A stretch of DNA of 64,000 nt from Amphiscolops sp. MND2022 (Eukaryota), in the NCBI GenBank assembly GCA_964187785.1, contig OZ076412.1:25048001-25112000 (forward strand), read 5' to 3'. Positions 24,975-55,898 of this stretch are shown one piece after another. The notes under the pieces were generated by a model, which searched no databases, was not told where the DNA came from, and was given only the letters and a program-made list of their open reading frames with translations. Every line of letters starts with the position of its first letter. The first letter of the stretch is position 1. A program made the translations under genes and the position numbers.

Positions 24975-27900
24975 CTATCGAAAAAAGCAATAACAGTTTC
25001 TGAAAAATATATCAAATTTAAAACAATTTTTTGCTGTGTAGTATGTGTAGTCCAGGATAGTAGAATTTCAATTATTGAGTTGAAAAAATGTTAAACTTGG
25101 AATGGTTCAATAAAAATTTTTTAAAATAAATTTTTAAAATAAACAAGATTATTTGTTGAGTAACAGAGACAATGTTTCATGTCATGCTTGCTAGCAAGAT
25201 ATTCTATGATAATACAGTGTGTGGACTGTGGATGGTATATAGTACCAGTTTCGTTATCAGAATATCTGTTCAAGTATATTTGTGTGAACTATTTCCCAAG
25301 TCTTCACCTGGGTTATTGCGACAAGTAACAGGACGCATAACACCACTTGGGTCATCTTGGAGCAGCTGCGGGCACAGACAGAAAAGCAATTCATTCTTGA
25401 GCAGCGGTGAATTGTTCAATCCTGAAAATGGCCGTTAAATCTATATAATATCTTCTCTGAAAACTTTTATAGTTTCTGCCCTATTTCCCCATGCGAGAAG
25501 ATATTTTCAAGCTCAGCCGCATTTCCCCCTCATTTTGCCATGTTTCAAAAAATTTTTTACAATTTTGTACTCAAATATTGAGGTTTTTTAGTGAATTCAC
25601 TCACATACCATAAGATTGGGTCCATATAAAAAGTATTTGTGAAGATGCCTTTTGAAAAGCGCCTGGAAAAAATGGGGAAATAAACCAGAACCGCAAAATT
25701 TTTAGTATTTTCGAGCGCTTCCTTGAAAATTTTTGTGGGCATGACTATCCAGAGAGCTCAGCTAAAAGAAGTTAGCTGTTTCGCGTAACTTTAAAAAGCA
25801 ACTTTTTTAAATTCAAAAAAGTCCCAAATTGCTCATTAAAAGCTTTAAAATTTGGCCGTTTTATCCAACTTTGGTAAAATTTTTGAATGTTTTTGTGGAT
25901 ATGATTAAAATGATATAAAAATTTCTATTGGAATGATAAAAAATTTCTAGCGACCTAAGAAACTTTTCTATAGAGAAATTTGAGATTTTTCATTTTAAAA
26001 AGACCAAATTGGCCACAGGAGCAAAAAAGAAAAAAAGTTTTACGCAATCTTCGAAAATTTTAGTCTGTATCCACAGGGCTTAACTACAAAACAGTTGGTT
26101 ATCCAGCATACCTTTCTTCAGAATTTATGCCTAAATCAAACAGAATTGCCTGAAATGAAGAATATGCCTAAAATGCACCCATTAGACACGAAAAAGAATA
26201 TTTTAGGCTTAAATTGATTGGCTTAGTGTTCAGCGGGCGTCTTGTAGAGGTGTCAATCGATTTTTCAGCAAATGGCCATTTTTCAATTTTTTTTAAAAAT
26301 CCACTTTTTGAAACCTTTTTCGTATTAGGATCTTGAATGTCCATGAAAGAAGGTAGCAAATAGTTTCAACGAAAAAACCATTTCTTATTGGAATGTTTTG
26401 CTTTTTTAAAATTTCTATCAACGAAGACAGGATTTAATAAAACTTGAGGGATTGAAAATACATCGACAAAATTGGAAACTTGATAAATCCTTATTTTCAA
26501 ATTTTCAACTCAAATCGGTATTAGAAGCTTACTACCAGTCATAAAAGATTTCTCGAATGCTTCATTATAAATAACAAAAGAATGTATGAAAAGAGCTAAA
26601 ATCATTATCTTAGTACATACAACAGTTCGAACAAAGATTGAAGTAGTAAACTTTTTCAGCAGTTTTTCCTTTCTGGTTAATAATTAATGGTGGAAATATA
26701 TGTCGGAGCAAAACTGACAATGATTTTTGAATTCAATGAAAAAAACTTTGGCGATGATTGCTTCAGTCAAAGCTTGTGTTTCTTAGCTTTGATATTTTAT
26801 CTCTAGTATCTTGTTTTTGAATGTTCGAATAAAAATGATAACTTACTATGTTTCCGTTTTTGTAGATTTTTTTTGTGATTGTTGTGTTTCGTTCGAAGCG
26901 TCTGCCTGGAAATCAGCAGAGAGACTGCGATTTGCGAATTTCGCAGGATAGAGAGAAGAATCAAGAAGAAACGACTGTTGGTTGGCTGTGGGAAATAATA
27001 AATGGTATTTTATGGCAAGTTTTTAAAGACCCTTTATTAACATAAAAAGCGACACACTGAAATTACAGAAGAAAAGCTTCACGTTGCTAGATAATTTTAT
27101 TCCCGATTTGAAAGTGCTAATATTTCCATAAATCATTCCACGGAGTCATTTTACACGGAATGTATTCACTTAATATGAATCAATATATACTTCCACGGTT
27201 CAATATACTCAATGTATATACTTTAGTGTATATAACCCCTTCGTTTCTGATAGGTCCGGTCGGTGTAATAACCCCGACTATTAGTATTTAACAGAAGTTT
27301 TAACTAACCCGGTTTATATTATTAGCAAATCAGATGGCGTTGCTTGCCAATTGTGGAAACAGAGGGAAAATAAAACAAAAGTGAATAATTTAGAAGTGAA
27401 GCGAAAAAAATGAAATGAACAATTTTATTCTCAGCGTAGAATCTACCTAGATTAGATTATAACCGAGGTAATAACAAAAAGGTTTTATCAGCTTGGAATT
27501 GAGTCTGAAAAAGTTTAAGGTATTGAAACGGTGTTTGAAAAAGAGGCTAACAATAGCAATAATGATACGACAAATAACAATTATTATTTCCCCCAAATAC
27601 GGTCCTTTTCAATAGAAGTTGGGCGGATACCCCGGAATGATTTTTCCCTCTAATATAATTTGCCGCAGTTGTTCACACAGCTTCCCAGCGGTTTTTGTAG
27701 CCTCGAAATGGGAAAAACTAAGAAAACAATCTTTTTCACTTTCACCCTCGCACAAAGGAAACACCCCCTAGGAAAATAATCTGGAAATAATGACGCAACG
27801 CCGCCAGCAGTTCCTTAAAAAGTTCATTTTTCAGAGAACGAAGTGCGCAATGGTGCTTGAAGCTTGTACGTTACACAAATTGTGACAAATTATCGCGACA

Positions 27901-29360
27901 CAGAATTGCGACACTTGAAGAAAAAGCACTTGACTTATTTAGTAGAAGCTCCCCGGTTGACTATTCACTCCGGAAAGGTGACTAAAATGGAATAAAAATA
28001 CAGAATTCAAAATTTCAGGAGGTTAAATGTACCTTAATTAGAGAGAGGTTATTTTTCCCTAAATGGAAATCCACAAATTTACCTACACACGAATGGGACT
28101 GATCCATGAATTTTTTTCCGATTTTGTCAGAAAAAAAATGAATCAATGGTGATTTTCTGACAAAACAAAAATCCCAAAATTGTCTTACCAATCTGTAGAA
28201 GAGTGAGGCTATAACAGACGATGAAAATGGAAAGATGAAAGTGAGAGACTAGAAAGATACTTCCATATAAAACTATATATCACTTGTATAAATTGTTTCT
28301 TCTATTTTAGCTCCTTTTAGATCAGCATGCCAACCCACAAGCACTTTGGAGGGATTTAAAATGGATTTGAGGCCTTTTAGAGGAGATAAATTTTGTGAAA
28401 AAATCGCTCCCGCCGATTCGGTTCAAAGGAAGGTATTATTTTCAGAGAAAAATTCCATAGGGATGACAATTTTTAGGGAAAATTGATGGATTACTTGTAG
28501 TTGATAAAAGTTCTTTTTTGAGAATCTTCTCACCCTATAAATGCTGAACAGAGTTCGCAAGGTTCCTGAAATAGTAGATACGAATTGCATTTCCAGAGAA
28601 TCCAAATTGCACTTCCAGAAAGTCAAAACTGGAATTTTAATGTCACGATTTCAGCAATTAATATAGAATTGTGGGACATTGTGGAACAGTTAGATCGGTT
28701 TTTAGTAAACTCGGTGTTTTTATCACTCGATAATGATATTGAGCTGCTTTCATTTGTCATTCATGTGTGGACTCTATGATAGCAACCCTACGATGACGAC
28801 TTATACTCTACAGAGGAACACGGCGCCGTTCATTCAACGACAGTGATGACTGGTGCTCCATTTTAACAGCCCAACTGCCCACTTGACAGGGACGTCAAGC
28901 ATAGACCCCGGAGAGTGTGTAACGACCACTCAGCATTTGAAAATTTCGTTCAAGGGGCAGGTTTTGACAATTTTGGTCATATTCTGCTGATCGCTTCCGT
29001 TTCTTCAAAAAAGACCTGCCAGCTGAATCAAAGAGGCCCAGAGCGACAGAGTGCGAGACCCAGACCAGCTGTACGAAGACGAAAAAAAACGAATCGAGAA
29101 AGTGCGAAACAGGCCAGAAAACAGACTCAATTTTGCTAATTAGGCCAATACGGACTTCTGTTTCAACCAGCGCTATCTTTGGCAAGTTGCTTCTAATTGT
29201 TGCAATTACTTGAAATGAGTCTGTTCGCTTAAACAAGCATCCGTGCATCTCTTCCCCTCTAATTGTTGCCTTGCCATATTCATTGTGCCGTAAAATACCA
29301 ATTATCTTGATGATTTAGCTCGTGAGCTACTTTTTCACAATCTGTGACGAAGAAATTCAC

Positions 29361-29489
29361 CTTTGCCATCATCGTCGTTTTGAAAGGCTATCTGAGTGGT
29401 GATTTTGAAAGAAAAGCGTAATTCACGGTACCAATAGCAATTAAAGTCTGCACCAGGTCGACGAACACTCCACGCGAGGCGGAATCCTA
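29361..29489 (-). CDS. Putative exon of host gene A (GFRLAWSVRRPGAD...QNDDDGK)
   Basis: cacAG acceptor, GTGAAT donor, 129 nt, phase 1 to 1. Confidence 0.45.
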
Positions 29490-29569
29490 CTGTGACGGGG
29501 CAGTTTTTACTCGAAGGAGGCAAAATGGACTAATGGCTGTGGGCGCCTGTCCCGGGCAAATACCCATAC

Positions 29570-29638
29570 CATCTGCTCCTCCATCTTTATAGCTGAGCTG
29601 CGGCAATGGTGAGAGCTTGCCGTTACAATTCATAGACA
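29570..29638 (-). CDS. Putative exon of host gene A (SMNCNGKLSPLPQLSYKDGGAD)
   Basis: tgttgttcAG acceptor, GTATGG donor, 69 nt, phase 1 to 1. Confidence 0.4.
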
Positions 29639-29655
29639 CTGAACAACAGTGAACG

Positions 29656-30310
29656 AACAAGCCGGGAACTGCCAAAGTCGACGGTATACCTAAGGCTCAA
29701 AAAGCGCACTTTTTCTATTGTTTATTCGAAGCGTTTTTCAAGAAAAACTCAAAACAAAGTTTCGAAACACTTTCGAAAATCCCAAACGACCAATCTGGCG
29801 CGCTGGGCGCCCGCTAGTCATGGCCCCTGGGACGCTAAAAAGTGGGTCCATTTGGGATTTTGTAACATACTTCCAGTTGCTAAATATCAAAAAAATTGGA
29901 ACGGGACCCTCTGGAGGCTTTGAAAATTTTTCGAAAAAAAGCAAAAAATGAAAACTTAACTTCGAACAGTCTCACAGTGCCAAAAAACGTAAAGGGGGAC
30001 CCTTTGGGATTTTCTAACATCCATTTAGTTGCAAGATATTTAAAAAATGAAGGGGCCCTTTGGTGCAATAAAAAAATTTCCCAAAAAAAGTCTCATAGAA
30101 AAACTCAAAATTAATAACACAGAAGGGGCCCTTTGGTATCTTTTCGAAAGTAACGACGTTGGTTTTGTTTTGGACGAGTTTCTGACGTTTCAAGTATGTT
30201 TTGGACATTCGTAGTTCAAGTTGAACAAATGAACAGAATCGTGGACCTTACGCGTATTAAAAAACTACCAACTGTAAGAGTCGGTCCCTTTTCTGCAAAA
30301 GCGCCGACTA
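29656..30310 (-). mobile_element. HINE-A copy with both termini
   Basis: AACAAGCCGGGAAC..AAGTCGAC at left; hairpin AGTCGG..CTTTT..AAAAGCGCCGACTA at 30279-30310. Confidence 0.65.
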
Positions 30311-31450
30311 GAAATAGCCTGATTACGCTTGAAAAACCACAGCTTGTATAAACCACAATTAACCTGAGGTTTCTCAGGCAAAAACCTCGGTTTCTTCGAG
30401 CATCGGAACATTCAACGACAAACTAGACATGCTGAGAATTAGCATAACTTAGTCAGCAATTACAGACAATTGATGAACTTACTGTGTATCCTTGAACTCA
30501 AGTGTCAAATTCTACCTTAAATTTAAAAACTTTATCACAATTTGTTTTTGACAATTAGGCTTGATTTTACTGCAATTGATTAGATTGAATGTCCGTTGTG
30601 CAAAAAAATAGGGAATAAAAAGGAAACTCTCCATTACTTTTCAAAATTACCTAGGTTTATTTCCTTTTGACCCTAGTATAAAAATGCTCTTTTGCAGAAC
30701 AAACTTGCTTCTTTTTGACTAGTTTTATCCCTATACTGACAATATCATTACCTGGTAATCTAGTAAGTGTTTGCCTCAATTAGTGATGTGACTGCAAACG
30801 AAACTGGACCAATTGCTTTTGTATTTAACCAAACGAAAAAGCTACATGAATTTGTGCATTTTTGCATGGTAGCCTCGTCTATTTTTTATGTGACATCCCT
30901 CGTCTATGGAGACTTTCTGACTCATTTTGATTTTGAAAAGTAGTTGGAAGGAATGGTTAAACTTTACACATACTATACAAGAACTTATATCGACTTGACC
31001 AGAAAGAAGCCACCTGATGTTGATGATAGTGGTCGTCACACGATTAGGGAAATGTATGATTCACACGTGAAACAAGTGTTTGCATAAAAAAGTTAATCTC
31101 AAGAAAGTTTTTCTATTGAAATTTTCCATGTTTGTAATTACATGAAACTTTCAAAGACATAAATCTATTTCCACCTAAAAGCTTTCTTGCTGTTGAAAAA
31201 GAAGCTCGACGTTTCTATCATGACATTATCTAACTCGCAGAAAAAAGCTCATTTGTGTATTATTAGCGAAACTTGTTCTAAGGTCTCACAACTTAATCGA
31301 AACACTCTTTTGACTAATTTTATGAGGGGACTGGGTTTTACAAAACTCCTCGCTTCTTTTCCACACAGTAAATTGCCACATTGAGTACTCAAAAAGGAAC
31401 GCCACTTTTATTTTCCACTTTATTAACTCAAAGCTTAGACTCAAAACATG

Positions 31451-33790
31451 AGACCTTCTAGAACATTAAGGATCCAATTGTTCTGGTAGTCCTCTGACCA
31501 TTTAACGATCCTCATTTTCGTCCGATAGGTGATATCAAGGTTTCTTAACTCCTTTCATGTTGAAAAATTCTTAATAATTTTGATTCAACTTTTCATCACA
31601 TTACAAGATGATTTCGACTTAACCGTAAGTCCAACTGAGATTTTTCAAGTTTTGTCACAATATTCCTCTTATTTTGACAAAAACTGCTACAATTAAGGGG
31701 GTTAATTGAACTCTTGCATTCTATGCTACAAAAACTCTTGGCTAACTTTTATTTACACTAGTTATTATTTACACTAGCAAAAAGAAGAAAGAAGAAAGTT
31801 AGTTCTCCAATTCCGCGGGGTGGACGCTGAATAAGCATTCTCCTTTTCTAAGTCGGCACCCTCTGGGATGCTATCATACTATCATGTCCACATAGCAACC
31901 CGGGTTGACCCTTCATGGATATCTCAGTAAGACCTTGGCAAGATATTGCCAAGAGTTGTAAGATGCCATTGTAAGATCTTATCAAGACAGTCATGCTTCC
32001 AAGAAAAATCTTACCAAGAAGCCCAATATGGAAGGAAAAATCCTTCTGAGAAGTCCAATATGGCAAGAAAAATTTATCACCAACTGCTTGATTTCGAGAA
32101 AAAGCAGAATCAGAGAAGCAATAAATTTAAGTTTTGGAAAAATAACCTAGAAATCACTCAAAACAAAGTAAAACACTGGATGATTTTTACAACCACTACA
32201 AAAACATGAAAACTCACTGATTTAATTCTAACACCACCGGAATAACATCTGAAAAATACTAAAATTACCTGAAAATTACTGGAAGAAGATCTAAAAGCAC
32301 TGGCATAAGAACTACAACCTCTGGAATATCTATAAATCACAAGAAGAGAATCTAAAAATCACTGGATTTCTTCAATCTTCAAAAGAATTCTGGACGGGAA
32401 TAATATCTAAAGGGAATAAGATCTGAAATCACCAAATTTTAGATCTTCACTCCTTTCTTAAAAATAAGATTCGAAGGGAATAAGATCTAAAATTCTAGAA
32501 CTTATTCCCTTTGAAAGCTAGTGATTTTGCAAAAAAACTCAATATTTATACCATATTCCCTTCTGAAATCAAGGTCAAGGCTGAAAAATTGCGTAAAGAC
32601 ATGGCAGAAAAATTAACATCAGACCTTCTAGAACATTAAGGATCCAATTGTTCTGGTAGTCCTCTGACCATTTAACGATCCTCATTTTCGTCTGATAGGT
32701 GATATCAAGGTTTCTTAACTCCTTTCATGTTGAAAAATTCTTAATAATTTTGATTCAACCTTTCATCACATTACAAGATGATTTCGACTTAACCGTAAGT
32801 CCAACTGAGATTTTTCAAGTTTTGTCACAATATTCCTCTTATTTTGACAAAAACTGCTACAATTAAGGGGGTTAATTGAACTCTTGCATTCTATGCTACA
32901 AAAACTCTTGGCTAACTTTTATTTACACTAGTTATTATTTACACTAGCAAAAAGAAGAAAGAAGAAAGTTAGTTCCCCAATTCCGCGGGGTGGACGCTTA
33001 ATAAGCATTCTCCTTTTCTAAGTCGGCACCCTCTGGGATGCTATCATACTATCATGTCCACATAGCAACCCGGGTTGACCCTTCATGGATATCTCAGTAA
33101 GACCTTGGCAAGATATTGCCAAGAGTTGTAAGATGCCATTGTAAGATCTTATCAAGACAGTCATGCTTCCAAGAAAAATCTTACCAAGAAGCCCAATATG
33201 GAAGGAAAAATCCTTCTGAGAAGTCCAATATGGCAAGAAAAATTTATCACCAACTGCTTGATTTCGAGAAAAAGCAGAATCAGAGAAGCAATAAATTTAA
33301 GTTTTGGAAAAATAACCTAGAAATCACTCAAAACAAAGTAAAACACTGGATGATTTTTACAACCACTACAAAAACATGAAAACTCACTGATTTAATTCTA
33401 ACACCACCGGAATAACATCTGAAAAATACTAAAATTACCTGAAAATTACTGGAAGAAGATCTAAAAGCACTGGCATAAGAACTACAACCTCTGGAATATC
33501 TATAAATCACAAGAAGAGAATCTAAAAATCACTGGATTTCTTCAATCTTCAAAAGAATTCTGGACGGGAATAATATCTAAAGGGAATAAGATCTGAAATC
33601 ACCAAATTTTAGATCTTATTCCCCTTTCTTAAAAATAAGATTCGAAGGGAATAAGATCTAAAATTCTGGAACTTATTCCCTTTGAAAGCTAGTGATTTTG
33701 CAAAAAAAACTCATTATTTATACCATATTCCCTTCTGAAATCAAGGTCAAGGCTGAAAAATTGCGTAAAGACATGGCAGAAAAATTAGCA
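31451..33790. repeat. 1170-bp tandem duplication (31451-32620 / 32621-33790)
   Basis: Identical ORF triplets offset by exactly 1170 (31848/33018, 31946/33116, 32158/33328); about 10 differences. Confidence 0.97.
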
Positions 33791-33988
33791 TACGAATGTG
33801 AACATTTTTGAAACTCTTCATCGAAATTTTGAAATCTTAGATTTTTTTCTATCTTCGTAAAATTCGATCTTGGGATAATGATACATTTGGTAAGATCTTA
33901 GTAAGAATCTTGCCATGGGATCCATGGTTGCCAAGATGTAATAAGAATTTGGCAAGATGCTGGTAAGAGGGTCAAGCCGTGAATCTAT

Positions 33989-34263
33989 GGTACCATATTT
34001 GCAGCCAAGTGGTCAAGTAATGGTGGACTTAATGCTCTGGTATCAAAGTGACTTGCTCGATGTCACAAAGGTCTGACTGCTCACCGTTGCCCTTTTTATT
34101 TTTTCATTTCTCCTCCAAATGCGTTATTTTCGGTCACTGACCATGCCACTAAGCTAGGCATGAAGGACTTGCTTAAAGCTCAACAATGGTGAGTTGAGAG
34201 AGATTCGAACCTGTTATCGCCCCAGTTCAGGACAAATGCTCTAACCACTACACCATGCTCCCC
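33989..34263 (-). mobile_element. tRNA-derived SINE-like element
   Basis: Minus strand reads GCATGGTGTAGTGGTTAGAGC (A-box) ... GGTTCGAATCTC (B-box); body shared with 1901-2020 and 55657-55826; acceptor stem does not close. Confidence 0.65.
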
Positions 34264-35848
34264 TACTATACCATGCAAAATCGCATTTTGCAAACAAAAT
34301 CCCTCTCACCTAGCTGGTAAGAGAGTTGGGTAGGTAACTAAAGGACTGTCGCTTTGCTGCTGAGAATATTGGAGTGGCTATCAAAAAACTGCAGTATCAT
34401 GATTATAAAAATTTATATGGTCAAACAAGTGGCCTTACAATATAATTTCAGCTGACGTAAATTTAATAAAAATTTGTTTTTAATTTCGTTTTTTTTTTGA
34501 AAAATTATTATCAAGCCGGCAATGCCACTATTTCAATTTTAAGACGGTGATGCTTTGCGTAAGCAAGAAATGTATTGTAACGATGAATGACGTTGAAACC
34601 TCGAATTTTTGTCAAAACAAGGTACGTAAACAAAAAATACAGCTATCTCAGCAACGATAGCAAATTGATCTTTCTATGACATCTACAGAACTTGTTTTGC
34701 GTTCGGGGGCTTGGGAAGATCTCTGGTGTCGACCTTCACAATTTTATCATGTGTTGGAAAATTAAAAACGTAGTTCAACCACCTTTCAATGTTTCGTTCA
34801 CTGACGTTAATTTCACTAAATTGTTTATATAACACAAATGAATGCTTTAATCATCGTCGAATTTAATTTGACCAACTTAAGAGACTAAATAATCATCGAC
34901 TCAAGACTGTAAACTTCAAGAAAAACTGCTCTAAAGATGTATTTGATTTTCATTCAAGTTTTTGCATTTTCGCATTTTCTTACTTTTTAGTCACGAATTA
35001 AATTTGAATATTCACATTTGAATTCTACGAAATTAGCGCCGGACTTGATTGAATTGAAGGCTTGCAAGCCTTGAGCGCTTGGTTGAATCCATTTGAAAAG
35101 GTAAATGCCGAGATAACAAAATTTCTATTCAAAAGAGGCGGTCAATCTGTTCGCTTTTCATTTTAATTGACCGAGTTCATCTGACAGCTATTCATAAATT
35201 ACCTTCTTTGGAAATTCACTCTGAAGTTATTTTCATCAGCAATGCAAAATAATTAAGAGCTTCCGATGTTACAAAAAGTGAATTTGAAAAACGTATCGTT
35301 TCAAATCGACTTTTCGTAACATCGGAAGTTCGTAATTATCTTGCATTACTGATGAAAATATGCATATTTGCATTCATTGCCCGAATAAACCCAGTATTCT
35401 GCGTTTTAAAAAGAGACTGAACTTTTTTTTTCAAATGATCTTCATGCCAACACTTTTTATTTCTAAGGATAAATAAATCTTACTGAAGAGACAAATGTTT
35501 GCAAATTCCTGAGACGGACAAAAAATGATCTGGTCACATTAAAACCAATCTTGGGACGAATTTTTTGGCCAAGTTTCAAGGGTAAAATTATGATGGAAAA
35601 CAGTAAATTTCCATGCAAACAAAAATTTAAAAAGAATGTCTTGCAATTGGCCGTTTTGTCACTTCAGGTTTTTTTGTGTCTCCCAAAACTGTAAGTATAG
35701 CCTTCATACAACTAATAGTAAGTAAACTTGGTAAATTGGGTGTGACAGCGGATAGAGGAGATAAGGTTCAAGACTATATATAGAAATTGAAGTCCAAGAA
35801 AAATTGAATTATTCTGAATAGTGAAATCCTTTGAAGAATTTGTTTTAC

Positions 35849-35952
35849 GTCTCGGCCTTTCTTCTTTTGGGGCTTTTCGCGCTCCTTTAAGTCTGTCTTC
35901 GTCAAAACCAGCCACTAGACCGGTTGTATCAAATTGCTCCTGCATTAATGCA
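35849..35952 (-). CDS. Putative exon of host gene A (ALMQEQFDTTGLVAGFDEDRLKGARKAPKEERPR)
   Basis: Strong acceptor aattccttcAG, donor GTAAAA, 104 nt, phase 2 to 1. Confidence 0.5.
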
Positions 35953-36383
35953 CTGAAGGAATTAGGTATAAGACAGTGACAGATCGCAATAGCCTACTTT
36001 GGATTAATTTTCAGTCAAAACTTTGGAATGTTCTTTACCTTCATGTTAAACATTATCATCAAATCATTAAGTGTTGAAGGTCCAAAAAAACATGTGGTAT
36101 ATACAGAGTTTGGTGAACTTTCTGCTATTCCAATGTCTAGACTATTGACCGGTTTCTACTTGATATTAATTAAACTGATGTCTCACAAGCTTGGTCATTT
36201 GAGGTTGATTAGATTTATGGACCGTTTTATAAAGTTTGCGAGACTAGGTACCAGTCACAATATGGGGCTGCAAGTCGTATTGGGGTTTTGGTCGCGAACT
36301 TTTTAAAACGGTCTACACATACTGTTTTGCAAAGATACATGCTGTCATTGCAAACTTTACTGGCAATGGCGAACGAAACATCT

Positions 36384-36883
36384 AACAAGACGGGAACGTC
36401 TAAAGTCGGCGCCATATCTAAGGCTCAAAAAGCGCAAAAGATTTTTTTTGGAAAAAAACTGAAATTTTTGAAAATTTTTTTTTCTTTCAAAAAAAGTCGC
36501 ATAGTGCCGAAAAATGTAAAAGGGGGACCCTTCTGGATTTATTAACATACATTCCGTTGCAAAATATCAAAAAACTCGAAGGGGGGACCCTTTGGGGACA
36601 AAAAAAATTTTCGAAAAAAAGTCGCACAGTGCCGAAAAAAACTCAAAGGGGGGACCCTATAGTCTCATCCTGTTTTGTATCTTACGATAAAAATGGACTT
36701 ACTGAAAGGGGGGACCCTTTGCACTATCTCAAATGCGCTGCCAGTATTTTAGTAGTACTGTAATTAGTAGTTTAACGTTAATTTAAACGTTCGTCGCTTC
36801 GAGTCTGTCTTAAATAAAAAAAAAAGAAAAAAAAACGAGTGACTGTAATAGTCGGGCTCTTTTCTTAAGAAAAGCGCCGACTA
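36384..36883 (-). mobile_element. Complete ~500-bp HINE-A (non-autonomous Helentron-like) copy
   Basis: Stem-loop AGACG-GGAA-CGTCT plus subTIR AGTCGGCGC at one end; hairpin TAGTCGGGCTCTTTTCTTAAGAAAAGCGCCGACTA at the other; absent without TSD from units B-D. Confidence 0.8.
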
Positions 36884-39800
36884 AAAACAAACAGGGAAAG
36901 GCCCAAGTCGGCGCCCTGCTCAAGGTTCAAAAAGAGCAAGGGGTTTTGAATATGCGAAGGGACACTTTTGTGAAAATTGTTAAATCAAATTGGCAGAGCC
37001 AAAAAATACTTAGAAAGATACCCATGAGACTTAACAACCGATTTTACCCTAACTCGAAACATCAAAAACCCTATTTTTGAAAACAAAAATGTCGAAAATT
37101 ACAATTTTAAAGGGAAAAATCAAACAATCTCGAAGAATCCAGAAGGAGACCCACTTAGGTCGCAAAACACTTTTTCCAAGCCAAAAGTTTTTTTAGAAAG
37201 GATAAAGGCACCATTTGACCGAATGAATTTTTTTCAAGAAACATCGCACAGTGCTGAAGAAAAACCTAGTTCTATTACGCAGGTATTAAGTGAAACTTTA
37301 TCAGCCCCACATAAAATATATCAAGATAACACCCTTAAGACTCCAAACTTAGTTTTCCTTAACAGAAAACCTCAAAAAATGTGTCACAAAAAGTTTTTGT
37401 AAAGTACTTCTAAAATGTCTGCGACAAATCGAACAGTGTTGAGAAATTCTAAGGGAATAAAAACACAATTGCTATCTATGCTCAAAAAACTGAAAGGCGA
37501 CTCCGTTTAAAAAACTCAGAGAAAAGGTCACATAGTGCCAAAAAAACCTCCGGAAGGGGGACCTTTTGCTCATTCCTCTCCCCCGTTTTCCTGCTTTTCA
37601 GGCCCTGTCTTCAGGACTGGGATGCTTTGTTAAAAACAGGGCTAAATGGTTCATGAAATAAAGTTACTGCATGAAGCAAGCTTGTTGAAGTTTATGAAAA
37701 CTTATACAAGTGGACGTTTCACTTTGACTGACGAAAAACTTGACTTGCCAATGAAAGAACCTCGCAATTTTTACTTGTTACAACGCCCACCAAAAACATT
37801 CCACAATTTTTTTCAGTATTTTCTATCAGCATTTTACATTTATTGTACCGATTTTTAAAATAGAACAACACTAATAAAAGTTTTCGTCCGGCGCTTTGGG
37901 GCTTCAAGTGAAATGACGTCTCTTCACGATAAATTTGAAACACAAATCAGTCAAAATTGCCGTGAATGGGCTGAAAATGATTCAAAAATCAACCTTTCTT
38001 ATTCTTGATAGGGAATCAGCTACGCTTGCTATGAACGGAGATCATCGTGTTCTGTGGTATCCACAGTCTAGACCCTGTTTTGGAACCGTAGCGCGTCGAA
38101 ATGTGAGTCATTGGACGCAGATGATAGAATAGAAACAATTTTAAAAAATCAAACAATCAATTCGTTTCAGTCGAATCTTTTTTACTAGTGCGAATGTCAT
38201 AGATGAGTTTTTCTTATGAGACTTCGGATGAGCTGTTTCTTAAATCTCTGATACGTTTTTTATCTTCTTGACATATTCCAAATGGGAACCAAAAATCTTT
38301 CACCTACTGCTATTTTGCTCCGTTTCGCCCAGTTCTAACTTCTCAAAAATTACTGAGAGTTCTTCAACAGAAAACAGAGATTAAAAAGTTAAAACTGAAA
38401 CGTTACCGGTACATTATTTTGAAAGTGGCTTCACACTCGCAAAGAACAGGGTAAAAAGTTGATTTCCGGAACATATTTTTGCACAGGGGTATTTTCATTT
38501 CAAATATTTGTTTCTTGAGCTCAATATAGCGTGACCTGAACTTTGGCTGTTTATAGATAGGTAGTAATGTATGAAAAACTGTGGGTTTTTAAGTATACGT
38601 TCAGAAGACAAACAATAGTCAGTAAAAACATGTGGTATATACCGTTTTTGCTGCCTTTTTTGCTATTCAAATGCCTAGACTATTGATCGGTTTCTAGCTG
38701 ATATTAAAAATTCCGATGTCTCACTAGCTTAGGCAATTGACGCGGATTAGCTTTATAGACCGTTTCAAAAAGTTCGCGAGACTAGGTACCAGTCACAAAA
38801 TGGGGCTGCATGTCGTATTGGGGTTTCGGTCGCCAACTTTTTGGAACGGTCTATTCATACTGTTTTGCAAAGATACATGCTGTCATTGCAAATTTTACTG
38901 GCAGTGGAGAACGAAACATCTAAAAACAAACCGGGAAACGCCCAAGTCGGCGCCCCGCTCAAGGTTCAAAAAGGGCAAAGTGTTTTGAATATGCGAAGGG
39001 ACACTTTTGTGAAAACTGTCAAATCAAATTCGCAGAGCCAAAAAATCCTGAAAAGAAACCCATGAGACTCAAAACTCGTTTTTACTCTAACTCAATCATC
39101 AAAAACCCAATTTTTTGAAAAAATTGTCGAAAATTACATTTTCTAAAGGGAAAGGTCTAACAGTCCCGAAGAATCCAGAAGGAGACCCACTTAGGTCGCA
39201 AAACACTTTTTCCAAGCCAAAAGTTTTTTTAGAAAGGATAAAGGCACCATTTGACCGAATGAATTTTTTTCAAGAAACATCGCACAGTGCTGAACAAAAC
39301 CCAGTTCTTTTCCGCAGGTATTAAGTAAAATCTTATCAGTCCCACCTAAAAATTATCAAGACACCACCCTTAAGACTCCAAACTTAGTTTTTTGGAACAG
39401 AAAACCTCAAAAATTGTGTGACAAAAAGTTTTTGTAAAGTATTTCTAAAATGTATGCGACAAATTGAACAGTGTCGAGATATTCTAAGGGGATAAAAACA
39501 CAATTGTTATCTATGCTCAAAAAACTCAATGGCGACTCCGTTTGAAAAATCAAAGAAAAGGTCACATAGTGCCAAAATACCTCCAGAAGGGGGACACTTT
39601 GCTCATTCCTCTCCCCCGCTTTCCTGCTTTTCAGGCCCTGTCTTTAGGACTGGGATGCCTTGTTGAAAACAGGGCTAAATGGTTCATGAATTAAATTTAC
39701 GGCATGAAGCAAGCTTGTTGAAGTTTATGAAAACTTATACAAGTGGACGTTTCACTATGACTGACGAAAAAACTTGACTTGCTAATGTAAGAACCTCGCA

Positions 39801-40307
39801 ATTTTTAATTGTTACAACGCCCACTAAAAACAGTCCACAATTTTTTTCAGTATTCTCCATCAGCATTTTACATTTATTTTACAGATTTTTAAAATAGAAC
39901 AACACTAATAAAAGTTTTCGTCCGGCGCTTTGGGGCTTCAAGTGAAATGACGTCTCTTCACGATAAATTTGAAACACAAATCAGTCAAAATTGCCGTGAA
40001 TGGGCTGAAAATGATTCAAAAATCAACCTTTCTTATTCTTGATAGGGAATCAGCCACGCTTGCTATGAACGGAGACCATCGTGTTTTGTGGTATCCACAG
40101 CTTAGACAGCTCAAACAATCAGTTCGTTCCAGTCGAATATTTTTTCCAGTGCGAATGTCATAGATGAGTTTTTCTTATGAGACTTCGGATGAGCTGTTTC
40201 TTAAATCTCTGATACGTTTTTTATCTTCTTGACATATTCCAAATGGGAACCAAAAATCTTTCACCTTCTGTTATTTTGCTCCGTTTCGCCCAGTTCTAAC
40301 TTCTCAA

Positions 40308-40590
40308 AAATTACTGAGAGTTCTTCAACAGAAAACAGAGATTAAAAAGTTAAAACTGAAACGTTACCGGTACATTATTTTGAAAGTGGCTTCACACTGG
40401 CAAATTACTGAGAGTTCTTCAACAGAAAACAGAGATTAAAAAGTTAAAACTGAAACGTTACCGGTACATTATTTTGAAAGTGGCTTCACACTGGCAAATT
40501 ACTGAGAGTTCTTCAACAGAAAACAGAGATTAAAAAGTTAAAACTGAAACGTTACCGGTACATTATTTTGAAAGTGGCTTCACACTGGCA
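40308..40590. repeat. 94-bp subrepeat x3 in the array (x1 at 38350, x3 at 42460, x2 at 44610)
   Basis: TTACTGAGAG starts at 40311/40405/40499, 42460/42554/42648 and 44610/44704. Confidence 0.95.
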
Positions 40591-43500
40591 AAGAACAGGG
40601 TAAAAAGTTGATTTCCGGAACATATTTTTGCACAGGGGTATTTTCATTTCAAATATTTATATCTTGAGCTCAATATAGCGTGACATGAACTTTGGCTGTT
40701 TATAGATAGGTAGTAATGTATGAAAAACTGTGGGTTTTCAAGTATACGTTCAGAAGACAAACAATAGTCAGTAAAAACATGTGGTATATACCGTTTTTGC
40801 TGCCTTTTTTGCTATTCAAATGCCTAGACTATTGATCGGTTTCTAGCTGATATTAAAAATTCCGATGTCTCACTAGCTTAGGCAATTGACGCGGATTAGC
40901 TTTATAGACCGTTTCAAAAAGTTCGCGAGACTAGGTACCAGTCACAAAATGGGGCTGCATGTCGTATTGGGGTTTCGGTCGCCAACTTTTTGGAACGGTC
41001 TATTCATACTGTTTTGCAAAGATACATGCTGTCATTGCAAATTTTACTGGCAGTGGAGAACGAAACATCTAAAAACAAACCGGGAAACGCCCAAGTCGGC
41101 GCCCCGCTCAAGGTTCAAAAAGGGCAAAGTGTTTTGAATATGCGAAGGGACACTTTTGTGAAAACTGTCAAATCAAATTCGCAGAGCCAAAAAATCCTGA
41201 AAAGAAACCCATGAGACTCAAAACTCGTTTTTACTCTAACTCAATCATCAAAAACCCAATTTTTTGAAAAAATTGTCAAAAATTACATTTTCTAAAGGGA
41301 AAGGTCTAACAGTCCCGAAGAATCCAGAAGGAGACCCACTTAGGTCGCAAAACACTTTTTCCAAGCCAAAAGTTTTTTTAGAAAGGATAAAGGCACCATT
41401 TGACCGAATGAATTTTTTTCAAGAAACATCGCACAGTGCTGAACAAAACCCAGTTCTTTTCCGCAGGTATTAGGTAAAATCTTATCAGTCCCACCTAAAA
41501 ATTATCAAGACACCACCCTTAAGACTCCAAACTTAGTTTTTTGGAACAGAAAACCTCAAAAATTGTGTGACAAAAAGTTTTTGTAAAGTATTTCTAAAAT
41601 GTATGCGACAAATTGAACAGTGTCGAGATATTCTAAGGGGATAAAAACACAATTGTTATCTATGCTCAAAAAACTCAATGGCGACTCCGTTTGAAAAATC
41701 AAAGAAAAGGTCACATAGTGCCAAAATACCTCCAGAAGGGGGACACTTTGCTCATTCCTCTCCCCCGCTTTCCTGCTTTTCAGGCCCTGTCTTTAGGACT
41801 GGGATGCCTTGTTGAAAACAGGGCTAAATGGTTCATGAATTAAATTTACGGCATGAAGCAAGCTTGTTGAAGTTTATGAAAACTTATACAAGTGGACGTT
41901 TCACTATGACTGACGAAAAAACTTGACTTGCTAATGTAAGAACCTCGCAATTTTTAATTGTTACAACGCCCACTAAAAACAGTCCACAATTTTTTTCAGT
42001 ATTCTCCATCAGCATTTTACATTTATTTTACAGATTTTTAAAATAGAACAACACTAATAAAAGTTTTCGTCCGGCGCTTTGGGGCTTCAAGTGAAATGAC
42101 GTCTCTTCACGATAAATTTGAAACACAAATCAGTCAAAATTGCCGTGAATGGGCTGAAAATGATTCAAAAATCAACCTTTCTTATTCTTGATAGGGAATC
42201 AGCCACGCTTGCTATGAACGGAGACCATCGTGTTTTGTGGTATCCACAGCTTAGACAGCTCAAACAATCAGTTCGTTCCAGTCGAATATTTTTTCCAGTG
42301 CGAATGTCATAGATGAGTTTTTCTTATGAGACTTCGGATGAGCTGTTTCTTAAATCTCTGATACGTTTTTTATCTTCTTGACATATTCCAAATGGGAACC
42401 AAAAATCTTTCACCTTCTGTTATTTTGCTCCGTTTCGCCCAGTTCTAACTTCTCAAAAATTACTGAGAGTTCTTCAACAGAAAACAGAGATTAAAAAGTT
42501 AAAACTGAAACGTTACCGGTACATTATTTTGAAAGTGGCTTCACACTGGCAAATTACTGAGAGTTCTTCAACAGAAAACAGAGATTAAAAAGTTAAAACT
42601 GAAACGTTACCGGTACATTATTTTGAAAGTGGCTTCACACTGGCAAATTACTGAGAGTTCTTCAACAGAAAACAGAGATTAAAAAGTTAAAACTGAAACG
42701 TTACCGGTACATTATTTTGAAAGTGGCTTCACACTGGCAAAGAACAGGGTAAAAAGTTGATTTCCGGAACATATTTTTGCACAGGGGTATTTTCATTTCA
42801 AATATTTATATCTTGAGCTCAATATAGCGTGACATGAACTTTGGCTGTTTATAGATAGGTAGTAATGTATGAAAAACTGTGGGTTTTCAAGTATACGTTC
42901 AGAAGACAAACAATAGTCAGTAAAAACATGTGGTATATACCGTTTTTGCTGCCTTTTTTGCTATTCAAATGCCTAGACTATTGATCGGTTTCTAGCTGAT
43001 ATTAAAAATTCCGATGTCTCACTAGCTTAGGCAATTGACGCGGATTAGCTTTATAGACCGTTTCAAAAAGTTCGCGAGACTAGGTACCAGTCACAAAATG
43101 GGGCTGCATGTCGTATTGGGGTTTCGGTCGCCAACTTTTTGGAACGGTCTATTCATACTGTTTTGCAAAGATACATGCTGTCATTGCAAATTTTACTGGC
43201 AGTGGAGAACGAAACATCTAAAAACAAACCGGGAAACGCCCAAGTCGGCGCCCCGCTCAAGGTTCAAAAAGGGCAAAGTGTTTTGAATATGCGAAGGGAC
43301 ACTTTTGTGAAAACTGTCAAATCAAATTCGCAGAGCCAAAAAATCCTGAAAAGAAACCCATGAGACTCAAAACTCGTTTTTACTCTAACTCAATCATCAA
43401 AAACCCAATTTTTTGAAAAAATTGTCAAAAATTACATTTTCTAAAGGGAAAGGTCTAACAGTCCCGAAGAATCCAGAAGGAGACCCACTTAGGTCGCAAA

Positions 43501-45894
43501 ACACTTTTTCCAAGCCAAAAGTTTTTTTAGAAAGGATAAAGGCACCATTTGACCGAATGAATTTTTTTCAAGAAACATCGCACAGTGCTGAACAAAACCT
43601 AGTTCTTTTCCGCAGGTATTAAGTAAAATCTTATCAGTCCCACCTAAAAATTATCAAGACACCACCCTTAAGACTCCAAACTTAGTTTTTTGGAACAGAA
43701 AACCTCAAAAATTGTGTGACAAAAAGTTTTTGTAAAGTATTTCTAAAATGTATGCGACAAATTGAACAGTGTCGAGATATTCTAAGGGGATAAAAACACA
43801 ATTGCTATCTATGCTCAAAAAACTCAATGGCGACTCCGTTTGAAAAATCAAAGAAAAGGTCACATAGTGCCAAAATACCTCCAGAAGGGGGACACTTTGC
43901 TCATTCCTCTCCCCCGCTTTCCTGCTTTTCAGGCCCTGTCTTTAGGACTGGGATGCCTTGTTGAAAACAGGGCTAAATGGTTCATGAATTAAATTTACGG
44001 CATGAAGCAAGCTTCTTGAAGTTTATGAAAACTTATACAAGTGGACGTTTCACTATGACTGACGAAAAAACTTGACTTGCTAATGTAAGAACCTCGCAAT
44101 TTTTAATTGTTACAACGCCCACTAAAAACAGTCCACAATTTTTTTCAGTATTTTCCATCAGCATTTTACATTTATTTTACAGATTTTTAAAATAGAACAA
44201 CACTAATAAAAGTTTTCGTCCGGCGCTTTGGGGCTTCAAGTGAAATGACGTCTCTTCACGATAAATTTGAAACACAAATCAGTCAAAATTGCCGTGAATG
44301 GGCTGAAAATGATTCAAAAATCAACCTTTCTTATTCTTGATAGGGAATCAGCCACGCTTGCTATGAACGGAGACCATCGTGTTTTGTGGTATCCACAGCT
44401 TAGACAGCTCAAACAATCAGTTCGTTCCAGTCGAATATTTTTTACTAGTGCGAATGTCATAGATGAGTTTTTCTTATGAGACTTCGGATGAGCTGTTTCT
44501 TAAATCTCTGATACGTTTTTTATCTTCTTGACATATTCCAAATGGGAACCAAAAATCTTTCACCTTCTGTTATTTTGCTCCGTTTCGCCCAGTTCTAACT
44601 TCTCAAAAATTACTGAGAGTTCTTCAACAGAAAACAGAGATTAAAAAGTTAAAACTGAAACGTTACCGGTACATTATTTTGAAAGTGGCTTCACACTGGC
44701 AAATTACTGAGAGTTCTTCAACAGAAAACAGAGATTAAAAAGTTAAAACTGAAACGTTACCGGTACATTATTTTGAAAGTGGCTTCACACTGGCAAAGAA
44801 CAGGGTAAAAAGTTGATTTCCGAAACATATTTTTGCACAGGGGTATTTTCATTTCAAATATTTATATCTTGAGCTCAATATAGCGTGACATGAACTTTGG
44901 CTGTTTATAGATAGGTAGTAATGTATGAAAAACTGTGGGTTTTCAAGTATACGTTCAGACAATATAATAGTCAGAAAGAGAAGTCTTCACACTAGAAAGG
45001 AGTTTTTGTTTTAGCATTCAAGAAACAGGCCTTTGTTTTTGTTTCAGCCTTTTCTGAAAAAAACAGAAACTTTCTTATAGGCTTACAAAAAGGAAATCTA
45101 GTAAACGCAAATTCTTGCCTTGAATTTTCCGGACATTTCCCCCAAATTGTTGCATACGGTGAAAACGGTAAGTTGGCTATATTTTGCCCGTTCAATTGAC
45201 TTCATTATAAGTTTTTTCGTACAACTGATTTCAGTCATTCAAGAAACTCGATCAGCAGCCTTTGTTTTCAAATTCATAGTCTCTGAACGAATTAAATTTG
45301 CGGCCATTCGAAAAATTAATTTTGTGATGAACAGCCAAATTATGAGAAGGGCTGGGGCTCAGGCGCTGTCTTCAGGACTGGGATACCTTGTTGAAAACAG
45401 GGCCAAATGGCATATGAATTGAAGTTACGGCATGAAGCAAGCTTGTTGAAGTTTAAGAAAACTTATAAAAGTGGACGTTTCACTTTGACTGACGAAAAAA
45501 CTTGACTTGCCAATGTAAGAACATCGCAATTTTTACTTGTTAAAACGCCCACCAAAAACAGTCCACAATTTGTTTCAGGAATTGTCATCAAGATGCGGCT
45601 GGGGTATCCAGAGTGGAAGTAGTTGACGCCCTGAAAGTTGTTGAAAATGTGATCATCAAAAACCCTACCAAGCTCTCCACTTATTTTCAGTATCTTTGCA
45701 ACAAAGAATTGTTTCGGCCGTGCCAAAGAATTCAGAAAACCGATTGTTAACGGTTTAAAAAATGCTCCAGGAAAGTTACGAGAAAACATATGTCCTTCAA
45801 TTGTCTAAATTAATATTTTGATTTTTTGACAAGATGGTTCGTCATTACTTACACAATTGAAGGAAGGTTAATTTTCATCAACAGTTTTATAGTC

Positions 45895-46148: not shown

Positions 46149-47438
46149 ATGGACGACAACACAAACACTACTCCACGGAACGGAGTCACCAACAGGACGT
46201 CGGCGGGAAATCAATCGAGTGACCAACCGCTACCAAATGACACACTCAATAGAACCAATGAACGGACGTGTACACAGAAATTAACCATCCCAACATTGGA
46301 AAAACAAGATCACACCAATGCCAACATGTGGTGGCGAAAGTTCGTACAGTATATAAAAATGACCAAGGACTTGGATTTATCAAAGATGACAAACAACAAA
46401 GAGATACTGCCACAATACCGTGACCAATTGGAAACGGAAATAAAGGACATATTCCTATGGGCAATTGGACAAAACGCAATCACGGAAATGACCAAGACGG
46501 TTAGAGAAAGAGAACCAAGCTCACTCCCGTTACACAAGTTATATACATTATTCCGGTTACACTTCACACCGGAAAGAAATGTTCAACACAGCAGAGCCGA
46601 CTTCTTCGACCTCAAACGGGAAGACGGAGAGTCCGCGGCGGATGTATGGAAACGAATACTAGAAGTCGAGAAAAATTGCGAATTTGAAACAATAACCGCG
46701 GCAGAACTTCTAGCATCAAAATTCCTATTCGTCATCGGAAAATCAACAGGTGACTATGACCTCAAAAAGAAAATTAGAAAAAGTGACATGTCAATAGAGG
46801 CAATCACCGAGGCATTACATGAATACATGTACGAGAAATTGAACGACTCACCTGAAACAGAGGAAGAGAAGAAAATCAGATACCTAAATAAAAGAAAAAC
46901 AAGGAATACAATAGACTTGTCGGAAAAACCGACAAAAGTCAAAAAAGTAGACTGCAACAGATGCGGAGCACCCAATTGGTCCAGACAACATGAATGCCCG
47001 GCCAAAAGAAAGAAGTGCATGAAATGTGAAAAAATCGGACACTACGCAAAATATTGTAGAACAAACAAAAGAGTAAACCACGTACAGGACGATGAGTCAA
47101 GCAGCGCGGAAGAAGACGACTGGTCTCCAAACACAATCCATTCAGTAAATCAAATGGTACATTCAACACGCCAAACAAAGAAGAACGGTCCAGAATTCTT
47201 CACCCTCACCGCATTGGTTAACAATCGGCCAATCAAATTTATAATAGATAGTGGCTCACCGGTAACCTTAATACCGAAGTCACAGTTCAACAGCACAACA
47301 CCATTGAGACCGATTGGAACCGAATACAGAGATGTGAATGACAACCGAATGAAATTCGAGGGAAAACACAATTGCACTAGTCGAAATAAACGGGAAACGG
47401 AACAACTTAGAAGTCCTAATAACAACAAAGAAAACTAA
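46149..47438 (+). CDS. gag: Gag with CCHC knuckle plus aspartic protease (frameshifted at ~47367)
   Basis: CMKCEKIGHYAKYC zinc knuckle; FIIDSGSPVTLI protease motif. Confidence 0.9.
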   Translation: MDDNTNTTPRNGVTNRTSAGNQSSDQPLPNDTLNRTNERTCTQKLTIPTLEKQDHTNANMWWRKFVQYIKMTKDLDLSKMTNNKEILPQYRDQLETEIKDIFLWAIGQNAITEMTKTVREREPSSLPLHKLYTLFRLHFTPERNVQHSRADFFDLKREDGESAADVWKRILEVEKNCEFETITAAELLASKFLFVIGKSTGDYDLKKKIRKSDMSIEAITEALHEYMYEKLNDSPETEEEKKIRYLNKRKTRNTIDLSEKPTKVKKVDCNRCGAPNWSRQHECPAKRKKCMKCEKIGHYAKYCRTNKRVNHVQDDESSSAEEDDWSPNTIHSVNQMVHSTRQTKKNGPEFFTLTALVNNRPIKFIIDSGSPVTLIPKSQFNSTTPLRPIGTEYRDVNDNRMKFEGKHNCTSRNKRETEQLRSPNNNKEN

Positions 47439-47586
47439 CCCCTTATTAGGCTTGGATTGGATGGAGAAACTGTGAATAACACTCGATACCAATAAAATTG
47501 ATCCTCAGGTAAACCATGTAATCGAGGACTCGGACGTAACCGTCCTGAAGAAAAGATTTAAAACACTCTTCAACGAAAACCACACC

Positions 47587-48804
47587 GTGAATGGAATTGA
47601 GGTAAAAATACAACTGAAAGAAGACGCAAGACTGATACAGCAAAAAGGGAGACCAATACCGATCCACTTACAACAATCGGTCGGGAAAGAAATAAATAAA
47701 CTCATAAAACAAGGCCACGTCGAAAAAGCGAACAACATAGACGAAAATTGCTTTGTCAGCCCGGCCGTAATCACGGTAAAGAAAGATAAGTCGGTAAAAA
47801 TTGCACTGGACTCACGGAAACTCAACGAAATTACCATCAAAAGAAAGGCACAAATGCCCAACATGGAGGAATTAATTTCCAGAATTTCAAGAAAAATTGC
47901 AGATGGCCCAGCAGACGAAATCTGGACATCAAAACTCGATCTGGATTATGCATATGGCCAGCTAATCCTATCCAAAGAAGCCCAAAACCTATGCATTTTC
48001 GCCGTAACCGGCGGGGACTTCACCGGATACTACCGGTTCCTAAAGGGATTCTACGGGTTGGCGGACATACCGACCATCTTTCAAGAGAAAATCGACCAAA
48101 CACTGGAAAACAAACACCCAGCATGGCTAGACGACATCATCATCGTAACAAAAGGATCAAAAGAACAACATAAAAAAGAACTAATAGAAGTTCTAACCCG
48201 GCTGGAAAATGCCGAGTACAGACTCAGCGGAAACAAATCCGAATTTTTCAAATCCGAGATAGAATGGATCGGTCAAAAAATAGACCAAAACGGTATTAGA
48301 CCGTTACAAGACAAACTGATGGCGATAATAAATCTGAAACAACCCAATAACGAAAAAGAATTAAAATCATTTCTGGGAGCCATCCAATATCTATCCAAGT
48401 ACATAGACAATCTCTCCGCCCAAACAGACAGTTTGAGACAGTTATTGAAGAAAGACAACGAATGGATTTGGACGGAAGAACATACGGCGGCATTCGAAAA
48501 TCTCAAGCAAAAAATCACGGAAATACCGTGTCTGGCTCATTACAATTCGGATTATCATAACATAATAACAACCGACGCCAGTACAAAAGGCCTCGGCGCA
48601 ACACTCTGGCAAGAACAACCAGACGGAAGTTTAAAACCAATAGTTTTCGCAAGTCGATTCCTCTCAGACACCGAAAAGAAATACGCAATCAATGAACTCG
48701 AACTATTAGCCGCAGTCTGGGGATTAGAACACTTCCGATTATACGTTTACGGTAAGCCGATTAAATTACTCACGGACCACCAAGCACTCGAACCATCGAT
48801 TTAA
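47587..48804 (+). pseudogene. pol: Pol: reverse transcriptase plus RNase H, bounded by premature stops (TGA 47473, TAA 48802)
   Basis: ALDSRKLN, FYGLADIPTIFQ, WLDDIII, TDAS..GLGATLWQ, ELELLA, TDHQAL. Confidence 0.93.
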
Positions 48805-48858
48805 CGAAACCGATCCAATAAAACGTACAGCGCGCGACTGACAAGGTGGCTGGACCGG

Positions 48859-49194
48859 TTGGCACATTTCACCATTACTGTAAGCCATATCGCAGGCAAA
48901 CATTTAGCACTTACGGATTACTTGAGCAGAAATCCGTCAGCGCCGCCGCAAACAGACGAAGCGTACGACGAAGAATACGTCATCAATAACGTCATCCCGC
49001 ACTACAAATTTATCTCCAAGCACGGTTGCCTTAGCAACCACGTTAACCAATCAGAAAGCGAGACGGTCGAAAACGGATGCAAAGCAAATAACAAACCGCG
49101 GTCACAGGACGCGCGCAAACAAATTGCCATTGATTGCCTTAACAGCTCAGCATTAACACGCAACGCTTTAGAAAGTTTCAAAATGGACATCTAA
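48859..49194 (+). pseudogene. pol: Pol continuation (end of RNase H; same frame; stop 49192)
   Basis: HIAGKHLALTDYLSR, the typical RNase H C-terminal motif. Confidence 0.85.
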
Positions 49195-49206
49195 ACAATT
49201 GATAAT

Positions 49207-55826: not shown

Positions 55827-55898
55827 AAGTTGTCAAAAAATACATAGGGAAAGCTGGAATTTTTGCACTTTGTTGGGCAATCAGGGACTTTCTGTATT

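Follow-up and report, generated by a model that had tools for sequence, protein, structure and literature searches.

Non-autonomous elements of the Helentron type have been described under several names, and a family of short repeats found in a 64-kb stretch of Amphiscolops sp. MND2022 DNA (the window, meaning the whole stretch that was analysed) is compared with them here. The HINEs of mites and mosquitoes are non-coding, with a subterminal inverted repeat (subTIR) 2-5 nt from the 5' end and another lying deeper at the 3' end, a palindrome or stem-loop close to the 3' end, and boundary strings of 2-5 T's, which vary in length in mite and Culex HINEs; they occupy T-rich targets with no target modification, contain tandem repeats in some copies and reach thousands of copies (Thomas et al., 2014; PMC4067079). 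Drosophila DINE-1 (INE-1) has central repeats that vary in number, prefers TT for insertion and is likewise present in thousands of copies (Yang and Barbash, 2008; PMC2374699). The HLE2 non-autonomous elements treated by HELIANO carry a short inverted repeat at each end, a stem-loop past the right repeat, T|T insertion and a right terminal sequence conserved above the left one, the right terminal sequence being typically the better conserved in Helitron-like elements (Li et al., 2024; PMC11417382). In the Pacific oyster, satellite-like repeats are reported to be borne by non-autonomous elements of Helentron type, with tandem-repeat interiors that scatter or seed arrays (PMC7492417). All these features recur in the present family, which has a 5' hairpin and one to five interior modules and is typified by a copy at positions 36384-36887 on the minus strand of the window. 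It is very probably a non-autonomous Helitron-like element of the HLE2 group (Helentron/Helitron2, HINE/DINE-1-like).

The family departs from each of these systems in its details. Its 5' subTIR, AGTCGGCGC, is unlike all 15 published HINE subTIRs and shorter than they are (9 nt versus 12-15 nt), and its stem-loop lies just 4 nt from the 3' end (PMC4067079). The 13-bp subTIRs of DINE-1 (ATACCC…) are also unrelated to AGTCGGCGC, and the string TTGTT appears neither in the text of the DINE-1 paper (PMC2374699) nor in the supplements of the HINE paper (PMC4067079). Given this lack of a sequence relationship between AGTCGGCGC and the published subTIRs of DINE-1 and of Helentrons/HINEs, the family resembles DINE-1 in layout and not, as judged from sequence, by homology. 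Non-autonomous copies in the HELIANO work are tied to an autonomous element by identical terminal sequences (PMC11417382), whereas for the present family there are only candidate partners, and its modules are few (1-5) and degenerate in comparison with the oyster repeats (PMC7492417). The family is a clean new example of the known HINE layout, not a new kind of element, and it leaves existing knowledge of such elements unchanged.

Layout and abundance of the family

Coordinates refer to positions in the window, which is part of contig 4 in an assembly of 1.07 Gb that has 13 large contigs. The parts of the typical copy are as follows.

36384-36887, minus strand: young copy of the family, 504 bp including the T5 tract on its 5' side, 2.0% from the 29-copy consensus
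36883-36887, minus strand: T5 tract immediately 5' of the left repeat, exactly T5 in 25 of 29 copies
36874-36882, minus strand: 5' subTIR AGTCGGCGC, 9 nt, from the sequence and the genome count of the motif TTTAGTCGGCGC
36850-36882, minus strand: 5' hairpin of 33 nt, the left repeat paired with a partial inverted copy of itself, from a fold as single-stranded DNA
36518-36717, minus strand: interior modules with four GGGTCCCCCC motifs, from motif matches
36404-36412, minus strand: 3' subTIR GCGCCGACT, 20 nt inward of the 3' end, from the sequence
36388-36401, minus strand: 3' stem-loop AGACG-TTCC-CGTCT with a 5-bp stem and a 4-nt loop, from the fold and covariation
36384-36387, minus strand: 3' terminal TGTT, the final TT being indistinguishable from target T's, from the 29-copy boundary and terminus counts

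A sequence-only reading of this DNA had assigned the repeat to the Helentron (DINE-1/HINE) architecture, and this assignment is supported by its lack of coding capacity, asymmetric subTIRs, 5' hairpin, 3' stem-loop and boundary T strings, and further by T-rich targets, a better-conserved 3' end, tandem modules of variable number and head-to-tail clusters; the layout is neither that of a terminal-inverted-repeat nor that of a long-terminal-repeat element. The hairpin claimed for the start of the element has a fold energy of -10.6 kcal/mol in single-stranded DNA (z -4.1, equalled by 0 of 200 shuffles). It is followed by a T-rich spacer and then by the modular core, also claimed and present, in which the GGGTCCCCCC motifs are spaced 60-67 bp apart and together form a degenerate repeat of about 127 bp; module number is 1 to 5 across the copies of the window. 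The 3' end, with its inverted subterminal repeat, stem-loop and TGTT, lies on the minus strand where it had been placed: a conserved block of about 45 nt ends GCGCCGACT-TT-AGACG-TTCC-CGTCT-TGTT, and the stem-loop, which is the predicted local structure of the 3' terminus, begins 2 nt past GCGCCGACT and lies 4 nt from the 3' end. No frame of the 501-bp consensus stays free of stops for more than 68 codons, so the element has no coding capacity.

Both hairpins recur beyond the typical copy. Of eight diverged subfamilies, seven fold a 5' hairpin (z -3.0 to -5.9), and the inner stems are not the same throughout (TTTTCTT/AAGAAAA, TTTTCC/GGAAAA, TTTTCCC/GGGAAAA and GGCAC/GTGCC); the hairpin was judged by single folds, the RNAalifold consensus giving the outer 4 pairs only, owing to indels. 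One pair of the 3' stem differs between large clades, A-T in one and C-G in another, and a further pair shifts from A-T to G-T. Counted by eye among 100 listed of the 25,396 3' ends found genome-wide, about 52 are of the C-G type, about 44 of the A-T type and only 3-4 are mismatched. This covariation is one compensatory change that many copies have inherited and not a series of separate changes, and it shows that both large clades have retained the stem. The proposal that the stem is conserved while the loop varies holds in the window as well, where the loop, read on the plus strand, is GGAA at 36384, 62138 and 62694 and AGAA at 54699, 60514 and 61318, as had been claimed, with further GGAA loops at 56718 and 60806 and a further AGAA loop at 63504.

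The family is very abundant and young. A genome search gave 3,556 first-look candidates, 40 of which were scored; all 40 are full length, 95-97% identical and spread over many contigs. Copies with their flanks were taken at 29 places, a sample biased towards the subfamily of the window itself, and these are 495-513 bp long and diverge from their consensus by 0.8-3.4% (mean 2.0%). L003 and L010 are examples of young copies that differ from the consensus by less than 1%. Genome-wide, there are 5,131 exact matches to the 29-nt 3' terminus and 1,574 to the 26-nt 5' end, with no occurrence of either reversed control, so that the 3' end is conserved above the 5' end; 45 nt of the 3' end are common to all aligned subfamilies, while 5' ends and interiors differ. 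A looser 3' pattern (the repeat, any 5-bp stem frame and CTTGTT) has 25,396 matches against 0 for its reversed control, and the 5' motif TTTAGTCGGCGC has 37,462 against 151, in agreement with the abundance claimed from the window. Thousands of solitary copies with the same ends and unrelated flanks are found on all 13 large contigs. The 3' terminus pattern had 0 matches in scans of metagenome and viral contigs, and a literature search with AGTCGGCGC and GCGCCGACT returned primers and unrelated matches only.

Within the window, the 29-nt terminus pattern has 9 matches at no more than 3 mismatches (0 in 100 shuffles), the 9-mer GCGCCGACT 16 matches (0.07 expected) and the module GGGTCCCCCC 22 (0.01 expected). 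The earlier estimate of about 18 termini is roughly right, there being 12 3' ends within 5 mismatches together with older ends in a tandem array. The description of the family as the dominant repeat is overstated: it is abundant, making up about 10% of the window (6.3 kb), but it takes up less than the array, whose unit is 2149 bp, and its share is probably below that of Gypsy-like elements.

With 25,000-37,000 ends, the family and its subfamilies occupy about 1% or more of an animal genome of 1.07 Gb, and such repeats could easily be mislabelled by annotators as MITEs (miniature inverted-repeat transposable elements), satellites or unknown repeats. Its youth (about 2% from consensus), clean ends, nested insertions and filled/empty pairs make it good material for defining the cis requirements of HLE2 elements, namely the T-run, the 9-nt repeat and the two hairpins, and it could reveal how elements of the HLE2 type seed head-to-tail clusters and kb-scale tandem arrays.

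Boundaries and target site

Similarity among the 29 copies begins at the T-run before AGTCGGCGC and ends directly past CTTGTT in 29 of 29, where the sequence changes sharply into unrelated flanks; together with the thousands of exact termini genome-wide, this bears out the fixed ends that were expected of the family. The T-run, exactly five in 25 of the 29, is by eye T5 in about two thirds, T6 in one fifth and T2-T4 in a few of 100 further copies listed. The base following CTTGTT is unconstrained (T in 11 copies, C in 9, A in 7 and G in 2). The longest direct repeat shared by the flanks of the two ends averages 2.5 nt in real copies versus 2.7 nt in shuffled flank pairs, and by this test no target duplication beyond the T's is present at the 29 copies. 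G precedes the T-run in 16 of 29 copies, but no preference is claimed, since by an eye count of a larger sample its share is weaker, at 32 of 90 non-T bases.

The insertion itself can be read from two filled/empty comparisons, for which the following features are needed.

38917-38926, minus strand: empty site in unit 2 of the tandem array, with the equivalent insertion point at 38921|38922, from the filled/empty alignment
62694-63307, minus strand: copy nested in another copy, the host being 62138-62693 plus 63308-63369

The young copy lies in unit 1 of the 2149-bp array, and units 2-4 are without the insertion, with identical empty sites at 41070|41071 and 43219|43220. The empty units read …GTTTG-TTTTT-AGATG…, and the filled unit reads …GTTTG-TTTTT-(AGTCGGCGC…CGTCTTG-TT)-AGATG…, with the added sequence in parentheses. 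Insertion of the nested copy splits a T-run of its host as T6|TT; the T8 that these two parts make up is found at the same place in the consensus of the young family, and the nested copy itself has T9 there. In both comparisons the mobile unit adds its core and two T's, 3' of or inside a T-run, and nothing else is duplicated. The comparisons rest on array unit 1 and the nested copy; the paralogue pair L023/L022, whose junction is too diverged for its T's to be counted, and the undecidable nested cases L003 and L027 were left out. Both comparisons, with T5 already present in the empty units, suggest that the T5 tract belongs to the target and not to the element. The insertions at T5^A and T6^TT agree with the TT targets that the sequence-only reading had proposed, and neither they nor the 29 copies reveal the duplication past the T's that would speak for another kind of element.

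Candidate drivers and alternative readings

Candidates for a driving element are present in the genome. One locus (L056) combines a Helentron-type Rep motif, RGSPH, with DUF6570, the domain proposed by HELIANO as a marker of HLE2 (PMC11417382). DUF6570 has 42 matches in the genome, including open frames of 2,304 aa (34710325 of contig 1 and 45150217 of contig 10), 2,047 aa (69436273 of contig 5), 1,908 aa and 1,709 aa (55494986 of contig 4), and HLE2-type Rep genes with intact 2,304-aa frames are thus present in it. At one HLE2 locus on contig 1 (7349907-7355850, plus strand), an exact 3' terminus of the family lies on the same strand at 7359406-7359434 (plus), about 5 kb past the second Rep match.

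Several points weigh against the assignment to HLE2. The terminus near 7.35 Mb of contig 1 is a weak positional hint, with a chance of about 1 in 20 for two checkable loci, and upstream of the intact 2,304-aa copy at 34.71 Mb of the same contig the exact 26-nt 5' end is missing over about 270 kb. No autonomous element with the ends of the family was found in a scan of the extracted Rep loci L031-L060, the sole exception among terminus matches being an unrelated HINE copy on the opposite strand in L057. The perfect inverted repeat is only 9 bp long, versus 12-16 nt in the literature. The orientation relative to a transposase gene is assumed, and the mirror layout, HLE2-reverse, in which the hairpin is at the 5' end, may apply instead. 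Because of the boundary T's there are two equivalent ways to write the insertion, and an element running from AGTC to CTTG with a 2-bp TT duplication would explain the two filled/empty comparisons just as well; for DINE-1 too, it is on record that a TT duplication and the lack of any duplication are hard to tell apart (PMC2374699).

This last point is shared by the reading of the family as a MITE, which would run from AGTCGGCGC to CGTCTTG and be moved by a DDE transposase with a 2-bp TT target duplication. TT does flank AGTC…CTTG on both sides in every copy, the TT duplication accounts for the two comparisons as well as its absence does, and DINE-1 was itself originally interpreted in this manner (PMC2374699). 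The extreme ends, however, do not form an inverted pair, since the right repeat is 20 nt internal, and a conserved hairpin and CTTGTT stand outside it with no counterpart on the 5' side. The 3' end is also far better conserved than the 5' end, and precise head-to-tail junctions recur. Moreover, no DDE superfamily is known to make a TT duplication. A MITE is improbable. A canonical Helitron origin (HLE1, non-autonomous) is highly improbable, even though a young family of canonical Helitrons, with intact 1,320-aa frames and RGLTH as its Rep motif, is present in the genome, and a 3' hairpin and the lack of a duplication would suit such an origin: the 5' TC, the 3' CTRR and insertion between A and T are all lacking, the ends are instead a T-run with AGTC and CTTGTT, and subterminal inverted repeats with T-run targets are marks of HLE2.

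Two readings that invoke no DNA transposition of this sort come out as extremely improbable, both to the same degree. A short non-coding sequence with stem-loops close to its two ends and a copy number in the tens of thousands would suit a short interspersed nuclear element (SINE) or another RNA-mediated retroposon with terminal stem-loops that a reverse transcriptase recognises, but a tRNA, 7SL or 5S-like head is lacking (ARAGORN and Rfam gave no match in the window), as are an A-rich or simple-repeat tail, the element ending in CTTGTT, and duplications of variable length, both ends being sharp. The counts of 5' and 3' ends, moreover, are of the same order (37,462 versus 25,396), so that 5' truncation is not indicated. 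Recombination spreading a satellite or segmental repeat that is not mobile in itself would account for the modular interior and for tandem arrays such as those at 7575-10986 of contig 1 (period about 485 bp) and 29401876-29402923 of contig 13; against it stand the thousands of solitary copies with identical ends in unrelated flanks on all 13 large contigs, and the existence of filled and empty sites.

If the family is an HLE2 element, its movement may be pictured by analogy with HUH Rep-helicase transposases; the rolling-circle chemistry, the strand that moves and the driving autonomous element are all inferred. An autonomous HLE2 element would supply the Rep-helicase in trans, and this enzyme would nick one strand after the T's of the left boundary (T-run^AGTC). 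The nicked strand would be displaced or copied as far as the 3' hairpin, which would mark the end; with a cut made behind CTTGTT, it would be linked to a target nicked 3' of a T-run, leaving no target duplication. At 49 genome sites a 3' end is followed by a 5' end within 10 nt, the majority of these junctions being CTTG-T5-AGTC and 15 being CTTG-TT-AGTC. In the same scheme, the CTTG-TT-AGTC junctions would be precise end-to-end joins arising from read-through or from circles, and the CTTG-T5-AGTC junctions would be insertions beside a resident 3' end next to which TTT lies by chance.

A more specific proposal is that the family is driven not by an ordinary endonuclease-bearing Helentron but by an unusual Helitron-like lineage with a strict rule, by which insertion is always 3' of at least five T's, two T's are carried along and both cuts are made after TT. 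This proposal is rather unlikely; if it were true, the strict rule would make clear which of the boundary T's are part of HLE2 elements, a matter left open by the literature.

Other Rep-bearing families were also seen in this genome. The young canonical Helitrons are represented by L031 (51.74 Mb of contig 8), L033 (53.14 Mb of contig 13) and L036 (32.94 Mb of contig 7), which have identical full-length Helitron_like_N matches (205 bits), open frames of 1,320 aa and the Rep motif QKRGLTHAH. More than 25 further copies with open frames of 2,370-2,386 aa match Helitron_like_N only at positions 108-190 (about 43 bits); they lie at 73.4-76.5 Mb of contig 1 and about 15 other places, many of them clustered on contig 1, and they were not matched by the Helentron Rep of L056 or by DUF6570.

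Other copies, arrays and adjoining repeats

The remaining copies and related ends in the window are as follows.

29656-30316, minus strand: older full-length copy of another subfamily, 661 bp
36888-36935, minus strand: 3' end of an older related element (…GCGCCGACTTGGGC…TTTGTT), abutting the young copy upstream and present in every array unit
54699-55202, minus strand: older full-length copy, 504 bp
55894-56746, plus strand: long copy, 853 bp, with 5 modules and a perfect 29-nt 3' terminus
60514-64000, minus strand: seven copies or fragments clustered on one strand, their 3' ends lying at 60514, 60806, 61318, 62138, 62694, 63504 and 63918

The final 3.5 kb of the window are thus made up of seven copies, all on the same strand. 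Elsewhere in the genome, as seen from match positions only, arrays of whole elements with periods of about 485-510 bp are found at the start of contig 1 (7575-10986, about 485 bp) and on contig 13 (29401876-29402923). By the same measure, the element is also contained in kb-scale arrays on contig 1, with eight units of about 2.52 kb at 46921283-46938945 and a period of about 1.92 kb at 5126616-5132406.

The tandem array of the window extends over 36086-45590 and comprises about 4.4 units of 2149 bp, each with the older HINE-like 3' end and an internal 94-bp repeat in 2-3 perfect copies. Units 2-4 are near-identical, and unit 1 is 72-97% identical to them by segment in an ungapped comparison. 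In the cluster at the end of the window, about 285 bp unrelated to the HINE consensus (61452-61736) split the copy at 61318-62100, and neither ARAGORN nor Rfam gave a match there. Long open frames (429, 405 and 862 aa) are found at 46149-51795 amid a strong excess of A over T, and a skew of the same kind is seen in a second stretch at about 10000-16000.

A repeat of 150-225 bp begins directly past CTTGTT in two copies of different subfamilies and follows a plain T5 run at a third locus (1347-1505 of L024, 54484-54700 of the window and 1313-1466 of L011); it is either another family that targets T-runs or cargo acquired by 3' read-through. Resident 3' ends therefore seem to act as T-run targets for later insertions, the alternative being 3' read-through. 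In two further loci, L026 (at 586 and 1506) and L030 (at 561 and 1504), a HINE 5' end occurs twice with the same 12-nt upstream flank, about 920-940 bp apart, and a 3' end is found only past the second occurrence; this doubling may be a local duplication that includes the flank.

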